A DNA stretch of 64,000 nucleotides, from positions 1 through 64,000 of the IMG/VR virus record IMGVR_UViG_3300042923_000569. One strand, 5' to 3'. The notes beneath the pieces are model-generated. The model did not search any database. It had not been told where the DNA came from and saw only the letters and a program-made list of their open reading frames with translations. The position numbers and the translations under genes were made by a program. Below are positions 12,087 to 13,468 of the stretch, piece after piece; positions within the stretch are counted from its first letter, which is position 1, and each line of letters begins with the position of its first letter.

Positions 12087-12800
12087 ATGTTCAATATTAA
12101 CGCTGACGTGATTAAAAAAATCCTTGAAGTATTCTCTAGAATGTCAGCTCTGCGTATGGTCGCTCTTTCGTTGTGCTTAATGATGATGGGTATGGTTTAT
12201 GTAACTTCGGATACATGGTCTGCTTACATCGGTTCTAGGTTTAATTCATTGCAACAAAATGAAATGTTCAAACCTGCTACTTATGCGATTAAACCTCAAA
12301 ACCTTGCAAGTATTAATGCATCGATTGGAACGTTTATTCAGCAAAACAACGAAATAGCTATGATACTAGTTTACAAGCTAGTACCAGAGGCAGATGCATT
12401 CTATCAAGGGCGTGTTTTGGTAACCGGCATAGCAAGTAAAAGTACAAATCTAAACATAGATAAGTACAACTTGAAATGGCTACCGATTAGTGCTTTTAGA
12501 GCACAATCAAATATGATATTAAAGGGTAAGACATTTATTGGTGACATAGGAGTTATTAGCCGAGAGTATCTACAACCTGATAATGAGTTAAGAGATGAAT
12601 ATCTCACACCTGCTAATCTAATGGCAATTTACAATGATGGTGGCAAATACGTGATTTCAGTTCCGATTAGAACTAGTCGAATCGAAGGTTACGTAAGTGT
12701 TATTTTCAGAAATGTACCTGAGTCTGATGAACAAGCAAAACAATATCTAAATATTGCACAAGCCGTAGCGGGTGAAACAGGATACTACATCTCGTACTAA
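12087..12800 (+). CDS. t: T4 gp t-like holin (single TMD plus periplasmic GAF-like domain)
   Basis: Amphipathic N-helix, [31 protein letters not shown] and [19 protein letters not shown] align by eye to T4 T ASRVAVVILLFIMAIVWY, SAVYSFRP and SCPYFNLDNIYAGTITMYWYRN. Confidence 0.6.
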
Positions 12801-12811
12801 GGAGAATAAAC

Positions 12812-13468
12812 ATGTTTAATCGTAAAGAACATCTACCTATCATCGGAAAGATGCTTACACTGGTTGCGTGTTTCGTACTTGGTTTGTTCATTCTGTTTAA
12901 TATGGATGCGATTCATAGAAAAACGGAAGCAGAAGTAGCTCCAGCAATAATGAAAAATATGTCTTCTGTTAATCAACAGAACACTGAAGTCATTAATATG
13001 GAGTTCAAGAAGATGATGATGAAATTTCCTGATATATCTTCTGTTGTCTTATACAAGTTTGTATCAGATAAAGGAACAAAGATGTACACTGGTCAGATTA
13101 ATATAACATCTGAAACCAATGACGGTACTAAATTACCAAACGATAGCACAGTTGTCCCGATGGTAGATGGTACTAATAATATTCAGGAAATACTCTTGAA
13201 TAATGTACATTACGAAAACATTGCAACTATACAACTACTTTGTGAAACCCGATATGATAATACTCAACCATATTCATGTGAACGGTATAAACGTAACGGT
13301 GAAACTTATAAAAGTATAGTGTCTATTCCCATTGTCCAAAACATCGATATTGGTGTTATTGGCTATGTGATGATAACTCTAGGATCTGAATACGATAACC
13401 TTCAAGTTCAAAATCTTGTTAACGGTCTAAGACCAAATCTGGCTAATGTCCAAATATTAGCTAAGTGA
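12812..13468 (+). CDS. Second T-holin-like paralog (TMD plus GAF-like domain)
   Basis: TMD LTLVACFVLGLFILF; SSVVLYKFV and SIVSIPIV..IGYVMITL mirror the upstream gene. Confidence 0.5.
   Translation: MFNRKEHLPIIGKMLTLVACFVLGLFILFNMDAIHRKTEAEVAPAIMKNMSSVNQQNTEVINMEFKKMMMKFPDISSVVLYKFVSDKGTKMYTGQINITSETNDGTKLPNDSTVVPMVDGTNNIQEILLNNVHYENIATIQLLCETRYDNTQPYSCERYKRNGETYKSIVSIPIVQNIDIGVIGYVMITLGSEYDNLQVQNLVNGLRPNLANVQILAK

Follow-up and report, generated by a model that had tools for sequence, protein, structure and literature searches.

We analyzed two adjacent genes, here called ORF A and ORF B (ORF, open reading frame), in the virus record IMGVR_UViG_3300042923_000569. The record is a complete genome of 357,873 bp with direct terminal repeats, and its first 64 kb (64,000 nucleotides) form the stretch of DNA studied here, referred to as the window. 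The phage is a jumbo phage of the RaK2/GAP32/CBB type (~358 kb), with a DNA identity around the locus of ~75% to Pectobacterium phage CBB and Cronobacter phage GAP32 (Mimasvirus), in which the gene order is the same: IF-3, Dda helicase, RNase H, DHFR, a small membrane protein, ORF A, ORF B, a MazG-like pyrophosphohydrolase and RNR subunits. ORF A and ORF B are the sole plus-strand genes of this neighbourhood and form a two-gene unit amid minus-strand genes; the genome holds exactly two genes of this type.

12087..12800, plus strand: ORF A, 237 amino acids (aa), phrog_14938; proposed T-type holin
12812..13468, plus strand: ORF B, 218 aa, phrog_21209; proposed partner, an antiholin or timer

Each of the two proteins has one hydrophobic segment, close to its N-terminus, and both are predicted to be N-in with a single transmembrane domain (TMD) and a periplasmic GAF-like C-terminal domain, the topology and size of the phage T4 holin T (one transmembrane (TM) helix, N-in/C-out, ~218 aa). 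In the AlphaFold2 (AF2) models, A is composed of an amphipathic N-helix (aa 6–17), a TM and bridge helix (aa 21–60, hydrophobic core 21–39) and a GAF-like domain (aa 68–237), whereas B starts with a 9-residue N-terminus devoid of an amphipathic helix, followed by a TMD (aa 10–28) and a GAF-like domain extending from about aa 55 to 218. The helical moment of the helix preceding the TMD of A is 0.84, as against 0.68 for the equivalent in T4 T, so that the amphipathic helix of T is found again in A and not in B. A Cys pair, Cys144 and Cys156, is invariant in the B family, while A has no Cys outside its TMD. The periplasmic domains show the central antiparallel sheet, the flanking helices and the weak sequence signature of the GAF fold; a Pfam scan of A and B returned nothing but a sub-threshold PAS_9 match for B. 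A word-index search, covering proteins of 0.55–1.75 times the query length, collected 73 proteins in the A family and 26 in the B family, both confined to RaK2-like jumbo phages. The profiles of the two families match each other (97.8%, E 1.2e-12), which indicates paralogy. A sequence-only reading of this DNA had described tandem paralogs, each with one N-terminal TMD and a GAF-like periplasmic domain, the amphipathic helix being limited to the first and the Cys pair to the second; hydrophobicity, AF2 models, Foldseek and the profile match agree with it on all these points.

When compared by Foldseek with the PDB, the model of A retrieves the periplasmic domain of T4 T (6psk, 6px4, 6pxe) at ranks 5–10, with an E of 1.5e-5 and a TMt of 0.61 for 6psk_T, and the model of B retrieves 6pxe_T, also T4 T, as its top match (E 1.9e-3). 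Both proteins have the fold of the T periplasmic domain seen in 6PSK, 6PX4 and 6PXE, but this is the general GAF fold; indeed, ordinary GAF domains fit the model of A better than T does in VIA-align, where T falls outside the top 50. In BFVD, A matches over its full length the 'Class III holin' of Proteus phage Stubb and the 'T holin' of Serratia phage PS2, along with many unnamed phage proteins of 190–260 aa, several of them called 'GAF domain-containing'. Two structural look-alikes from Tenacibaculum phage pT24, A0A1B4XWY6 and A0A1B4XWY0 (190 and 193 aa), have near-consecutive accessions and may be another tandem TMD-GAF pair. The language-model neighbours of A and of B include PF11031 clusters, with a score of 0.96.

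Profiles were compared by hhalign between alignments of the A family (A1), the B family (A2), the T family (A3, 28 members), the superfamily (A4) and the secreted or lipoprotein paralogs of small phages (A5). Over 123 columns, all in the periplasmic domain, A4 matches A3 at 88.9% (E 2.4e-6), far above the controls: 0.4% with the T alignment reversed and at most 3.1% with 20 column-shuffled alignments. The alignment of A1 with T, which scores lower, stays collinear all the way from the TM helix to the C-terminus, with the main motifs of both families placed opposite each other.

Several results weigh against a kinship with T. The A family alone matches the T family at 14%, and the B family alone at 2%. 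A and B do not reach the PF11031 gathering score (22.2 bits), having no match at E up to 1; searched at E up to 10, this model finds nothing in the complete genome (357,873 bp), and none of the 34 superfamily members matches it. Searches of PDB sequences by phmmer or hmmsearch with A, B, A1, A2 and A4 gave no T4 T match; A4 gave only marginal GAF matches, and the single proteins, A1 and A2 only unrelated marginal ones. The disulfide C175–C207 of T, invariant in A3, has no counterpart in A, and C156 of B falls on C175 of T only in the 2%-probability alignment. Finally, no homolog of T4 RI was found in the phage genome at E up to 1; a weak RI.-1-like match is located at 147.9 kb.

On balance, we regard A and B with good confidence as membrane-anchored periplasmic GAF paralogs related to T. 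Of the likeness to T claimed by the sequence-only reading, the fold, the domain order and a remote profile similarity at the level of the superfamily have stood, while membership of PF11031 has not; Foldseek finds T4 T for both proteins. These data suggest that the T architecture is much more widespread than PF11031 shows, that its regulatory periplasmic domain is a GAF domain, and that pairing with a paralog is a recurrent means of regulating it.

According to the database labels of their relatives, A and B would be virion structural proteins. phrog_21209 (B) is labelled 'virion structural protein', and the B ortholog of RaK2, ORF145w, was detected by mass spectrometry (MS) in the virion proteome, which speaks for this assignment; the label has been carried from ORF145w to CBB_310 and to 121Q, BF and A4. 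phrog_14938 (A), for its part, is filed by PHROGs under 'moron, auxiliary metabolic gene and host takeover'. In the comparison table of the CBB study, the B ortholog is detected in RaK2 only and not by MS of CBB or GAP32 virions, and both gp172 and gp173 are absent from the virion proteome of phAPEC6 (62 proteins), so that detection in virions is not reproducible. The RaK2 virion data set also included PhoH and an ssDNA-binding protein, both of which were discounted by the CBB authors. A TM anchor, a periplasmic-type domain and relatives in lysis cassettes fit poorly with a tailed-phage particle, and we consider a structural role in the virion highly improbable. At window positions 43418–43978 and 43994–44650, on the plus strand, lies a second inverted pair of tandem paralogs (186 and 218 aa), both of which match phrog_9326, 'virion structural protein'.

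The lysis-cassette relatives come from an exhaustive, length-free hidden Markov model (HMM) search, run with the A-family alignment (A1) only, which gave 37 proteins including distant relatives of 220–260 aa with the same layout. A repetitive protein of 1154 aa, P0237, which matched in 10 short stretches, was dropped as unrelated. The TMD-GAF proteins P0230, P0236, P0238, P0250 and BK070131 NCTC12888_01471, from small phages and prophages, belong to the superfamily of A (HMM E 1e-10 to 1e-16) and have the same architecture, often with the gene of a second paralog directly after theirs; unlike A and B, their genes are set between the endolysin gene and those of a DUF2644 membrane protein and spanins. 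In a 43-kb contig, the TMD-GAF gene (P0230) comes after a GH19 endolysin and before a small membrane protein and an Rz-like spanin. In locus L010, the TMD-GAF gene (P0236) comes after a PF11860 muramidase and is followed by a lipoprotein, by a DUF2644 protein with two TMDs, and by two spanin-like proteins, first one of i-spanin type and then a lipoprotein of o-spanin type; this gene order is repeated in L011 and in L012/L013. In a prophage of Helicobacter pametensis, the TMD-GAF gene has a tail fibre on one side and a DUF2644-like protein on the other, and a T4-type lysozyme is close by. The endolysins beside these genes are of three unrelated types, namely GH19 (L005, L011), PF11860 muramidase (L010) and T4-like lysozyme (L015), and Rz-like spanins are present too. 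The order shared by these cassettes (L010:5740-7418, L005:6740-7892, L011, L012) reads endolysin, TMD-GAF protein, secreted or lipoprotein GAF paralog, 2-TMD DUF2644 protein, i-spanin and o-spanin.

Judged from this gene neighbourhood of their distant relatives, a role of A and B in lysis is probable. They might instead be envelope proteins unrelated to lysis timing, acting for instance in superinfection exclusion or in periplasmic ligand sensing for host takeover. GAF domains are generic small-molecule sensors, and the pair stands among nucleotide-metabolism genes, far from the endolysin gene; both points speak for such a role. However, the distant relatives lie consistently within lysis cassettes with three endolysin types, and the resemblance to T covers all its parts; in T4, too, the t gene is remote from e and adjoins an early gene on the opposite strand. 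An envelope role of this kind therefore seems to us a poor prospect.

The endolysin homolog of the phage is encoded outside the window (genome 137601–138530, minus strand), 125 kb from A and B; it has a TTG start and is 80% identical to CBB_187. It begins with a Gly/Ala-rich membrane anchor of the signal-anchor-release (SAR) type, which is followed by LysM-like and lysozyme parts, the domain description being that of the CBB paper (PMC5259590). The endolysin gene is solitary in RaK2-like phages. Two more lysozyme-domain matches are present in the genome at 74983–75868. According to the RaK2 paper (PMC3622015), both the T holin and RI are missing, and the CBB paper gives no holin name (PMC5259590); the A ortholog g406 of phage fEgEco12 (GenBank PP777464) has already been annotated as 'holin' on the basis of BLASTP and HHpred.

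The same cassettes raise the question of which protein makes the membrane lesion. A 2-TMD DUF2644/phrog_1322 protein with holin-like features accompanies the TMD-GAF gene in all five small-phage contexts with enough flank; with its two TMDs and charged tail, it resembles a class II holin and could be the real holin there, the TMD-GAF protein being the regulator, which tells against A as the hole-former. DUF2644 (PF10841/phrog_1322) looks like an unannotated holin family, for which a literature search on DUF2644 gave nothing. Carried over to the jumbo phage, A and B would then be lysis regulators (an antiholin, a releasin-like factor or an endolysin regulator), and another small membrane protein would make the lesion. 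Such a division of labour would suit the regulatory nature of the globular domain of T4 T itself (PMC12162936) and the N-terminal Gly/Ala-rich anchor of the phage's own endolysin, for which depolarisation may suffice without a large hole. Nevertheless, a DUF2644/phrog_1322 homolog is lacking in the jumbo genome, where the sole phrog_1322 match carries two stop codons, and the literature names no other holin for the group. A, moreover, has every part of the T-type set, the amphipathic helix among them. In the small phages, the GH19 and PF11860 endolysins are soluble, without a membrane anchor, and hence need a large-hole holin, which T-type proteins are known to supply. We therefore rate a purely regulatory role of A and B as unlikely, though a serious alternative.

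A 125-aa protein (phrog_23591) is encoded at window 11578–11955 (minus strand), divergently from ORF A. With its three or four hydrophobic segments and a C-terminal tail that is charged, it has a holin-like shape, but its gene heads the DHFR/RNase H/Dda operon, which is of early or middle type.

To address the relation between A and B, their periplasmic domains (A 62–237, B 48–218) were modelled as a complex, a check proposed by the sequence-only reading, and the pair obtained a score of 0.62 while the best of three controls obtained 0.00. In the calibration of this score, 58 of 80 solved complexes attained the mark, as did 2 of 110 mismatched pairs; these counts are only rough here since our own alignments were supplied. 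The runs agree in at least 88% of the contacts, and the partner pLDDT is at least 72. The modelled interface holds 10 of the 26 invariant residues of A (V99, P100, F105, Q107, P133–A136, L145 and P175). These motifs are also conserved in relatives that lack a partner, so that the surface may serve self-association too. The model could, moreover, reflect a generic GAF dimer mode common to paralogs, which would lessen its value as a sign of a specific A–B pair.

Natural variants of the pair were found in the Asteriusvirus genomes. In 121Q, fEgEco12 and phAPEC6, the B ortholog is split by a 1-nucleotide (nt) insertion (CAAGTTCGG vs CAAA-TCGG; L004:2116-2776, L023:2217-2877, L024:920-1579) and annotated as two genes, one of them phrog_36564, whereas it is intact (219 aa) in JNE01. 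Since 121Q, fEgEco12 and phAPEC6 are viable, intact B is dispensable for a plaque-forming phage, as antiholins are in T4. The A ortholog of all four genomes (121Q, fEgEco12, JNE01 and phAPEC6) lies in two frames, one for the amphipathic helix and one for the body:

L004:1351-1470; L023; L024:162-251 + 238-900; L025: Asteriusvirus A-ortholog frame split

The frame shift results from one extra base (...TCC CGG A ATG CCT... vs TCT AGA ATG TCA in the window). The helix ORF has its own ribosome-binding site, encodes MNIDLDSSIINKIL.VISRNACY* and overlaps the annotated start (MPVIRT...) of the TMD-plus-GAF body. This arrangement is awkward for A as a holin if the amphipathic helix must be fused to the body for pore formation; it could be explained by a programmed +1 shift at the rare CGG codon, or by helix and body being made separately.

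The sequence-only reading had left a choice between a two-component holin and a holin with a paralog-derived antiholin or sensor. Were A and B obligatory halves of a two-component holin, both would be needed for holes and B would not be inhibitory. The tight operon with its 11-nt spacer, the modelled heterodimer and the occurrence of tandem paralogs in three lineages are all compatible with such an arrangement. Yet many viable Asteriusvirus phages, isolated independently of one another, carry a frameshifted B, the Helicobacter prophage copy and similar relatives have no second paralog, and B lacks the helix that T needs for pores. We thus find an obligatory pair improbable. The partner idea as such has gained from the A–B model, which passes its controls, and from the same frameshifts in viable phages, which disfavour the two-component form.

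Second paralogs are not limited to the jumbo phages. The proteins of 143–191 aa encoded directly 3' of the TMD-GAF gene in small-phage cassettes have signal-peptide or lipobox N-termini and no TM anchor, and they belong to the superfamily as judged by hhalign with the A4 profile (94%, E 1.2e-7); the link needs this wider profile, the A1 family matching them at only 20%. The B family matches them (A5) at 0.3%, so that a specific common origin with B is not supported and the duplications look independent. Another phage carries a tandem pair of 175 and 231 aa sharing the N-helix and TMD.

The A–B unit is accompanied by putative expression signals of its own, which are listed together with the spacer and the terminator:

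11937..11944, plus strand: TATAAATA, identical to the T4 late-promoter consensus; 143 nt before ORF A and within the 5' end of the divergent minus-strand gene
12037..12056, plus strand: promoter-like element GGTAAATA-N2-TATA-N-AA, 30–50 nt 5' of the ORF A start; putative function
12067..12084, plus strand: purine-rich Shine-Dalgarno region (GGAGAGG ... AAGGA) before ORF A, kept in CBB and GAP32
12801..12811, plus strand: A–B spacer of 11 nt with a GGAGAA ribosome-binding site; ORF A and ORF B are translationally close
13471..13497, strand not assigned: strong intrinsic terminator hairpin with a 12-bp stem, between ORF B and the convergent MazG-like gene

TATAAATA at 11937–11944 is kept in CBB and GAP32, for which the coding constraint on the minus-strand gene could account. 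ATAAATA-type motifs and a gp55-like sigma factor have been tied to late genes in CBB (PMC5259590). Four further exact TATAAATA sites are present in the window (2382–2389, 28823–28830, 56828–56835 and 62727–62734), at or just upstream of gene starts; this placement fits T4-type late promoters, yet the total of 5 in the window does not exceed chance (shuffle mean 8.5). GGTAAATA occurs once in the window, and the GGTAAATA-N2-TATA block is invariant in five divergent jumbo genomes, those of the window phage, CBB, GAP32, L014 and Asteriusvirus JNE01. The terminator is flanked by an A-run and a T-run and is thus expected to be bidirectional; an equivalent one, Torf310, was predicted by the CBB authors (PMC5259590). 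The divergent minus-strand operon has a promoter of the form TGAAACG-N18-TATAAT at 12010–11981, and promoters of the TGAAACG-N-TATAAT class have been tied to DNA-synthesis genes (PMC5259590). With its own plus-strand signals and terminator, and next to an operon with a different promoter class, the A–B unit is inverted and separate. Of the separate, inverted late operon of the sequence-only reading, the inverted and self-contained part is therefore borne out by the promoter-like element and the terminator, while late expression is what we infer.

DNA nearly identical to window 11900–13600 was found in public runs from soil, plant, phyllosphere, insect-gut and food metagenomes belonging to 17 studies, which indicates that this uncultured phage or its close kin are widespread in plant- and soil-associated habitats. 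The indels listed for the locus contigs of three DNA metagenome runs all fall in the upstream region, the A–B spacer or the terminator, and none inside ORF A or ORF B. One metatranscriptome run gave three short contigs of a relative (90–95% alike), which do not demonstrate transcription.

Taken together, these data lead us to the following model. A would be a remote T-type (class III) holin with a cytoplasmic amphipathic helix, a TM helix that runs on as a bridge helix, and a GAF-like domain in the periplasm. Produced late, it would gather in the inner membrane and form oligomers that open holes or cause depolarisation, and this lesion would release or activate the N-terminally anchored LysM-lysozyme endolysin. 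B would be a duplicate of A in which the TM helix and the periplasmic domain have been kept, the amphipathic helix has gone and a Cys pair has arisen in the periplasmic part. It would bind A through the periplasmic domains and, without the pore-lining helix, poison or delay hole formation; it may also be the entry point of a periplasmic signal. In T4, T deprived of its first 22 residues loses hole formation and keeps self-interaction, and its amphipathic helix is proposed to line the pore (PMC12162936). B is in effect a natural N-truncated paralog, and it is this parallel with the truncated T that suggests A as the hole-former and B as a heterodimerising antiholin or timer. We give about an even chance to the view that the two form a lysis-control module, in which A acts as a T-type holin and B, derived from a paralog, as its antiholin or timer. 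The more specific assignment of hole formation to A and negative regulation to B is tentative and falls somewhat short of even; both hole formation by A and the direction of the effect of B are what we infer.

More speculatively, T could be the visible tip of a large unrecognised phage superfamily of lysis proteins made of a TMD and a periplasmic GAF domain, in which repeated duplication has given rise to heterodimerising paralogs acting as antiholins or signal receivers, an extension for which the odds are rather low. If true, the superfamily would span jumbo phages, small myo- and siphophages and prophages, and the anchor of the second paralog would be a TM helix, a lipid or a signal peptide. 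The GAF pocket would then couple a periplasmic cue to lysis timing, amounting to an RI-independent lysis inhibition, and the helix/body frame split of Asteriusvirus would be a translational setting of the holin:antiholin ratio.

A literature search found no paper linking holins to GAF domains in phages. While the 'holin' label of an A ortholog already exists in one record, the paralog partner, the modelled A–B interaction, the superfamily, its lysis-cassette context and the recurrent duplication are new here. Phages like RaK2, GAP32, CBB and 121Q are being isolated in large numbers for therapy and biocontrol, and A provides a testable candidate for their holin, reported as absent or left unnamed, which makes lysis timing and lysis inhibition directly accessible to experiment beyond the T-even phages.

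Among known systems, T4 T (218 aa) resembles A (237 aa) and B (218 aa) in size, in its N-in single TM helix, in its bridge helix and in its globular periplasmic alpha/beta GAF-like domain, while its cytoplasmic amphipathic helix has a counterpart in A only. The domain structure of T has been described as unique among holins (PMC12162936). As for A and B, the T4 T gene lies apart from the endolysin gene and has a late-type promoter motif, and its product has a periplasmic binding partner, as proposed here for A. The partner in T4, RI, is a small secreted protein, whereas the proposed partner B is a full-length paralog with its own TM helix.

Membrane-anchored GAF proteins are also known outside phages. 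SpoIISA of Bacillus subtilis has three TMDs and a cytoplasmic GAF domain, and is neutralised by the small unrelated SpoIISB, which binds the GAF domain. Its inappropriate expression is reported to cause lysis, and the SpoIISA–SpoIISB pair has been termed a toxin-antitoxin system (PMC3057836). SpoIISA is like A and B in being a membrane-anchored GAF protein, and differs in being part of a chromosomal toxin-antitoxin pair rather than a phage lysis gene.

The inhibition logic proposed for B acting on A is that of lambda S105/S107 and phage 21 S68/S71. In these systems, the holin is inhibited by a protein that is almost a copy of it apart from the N-terminus and that heterodimerises with it, both forms being made from dual starts in one gene, with three or two TMDs and no periplasmic domain. 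In contrast to these dual-start forms, A and B come from two separate, diverged genes, whose paralogy shows only in profile comparison.

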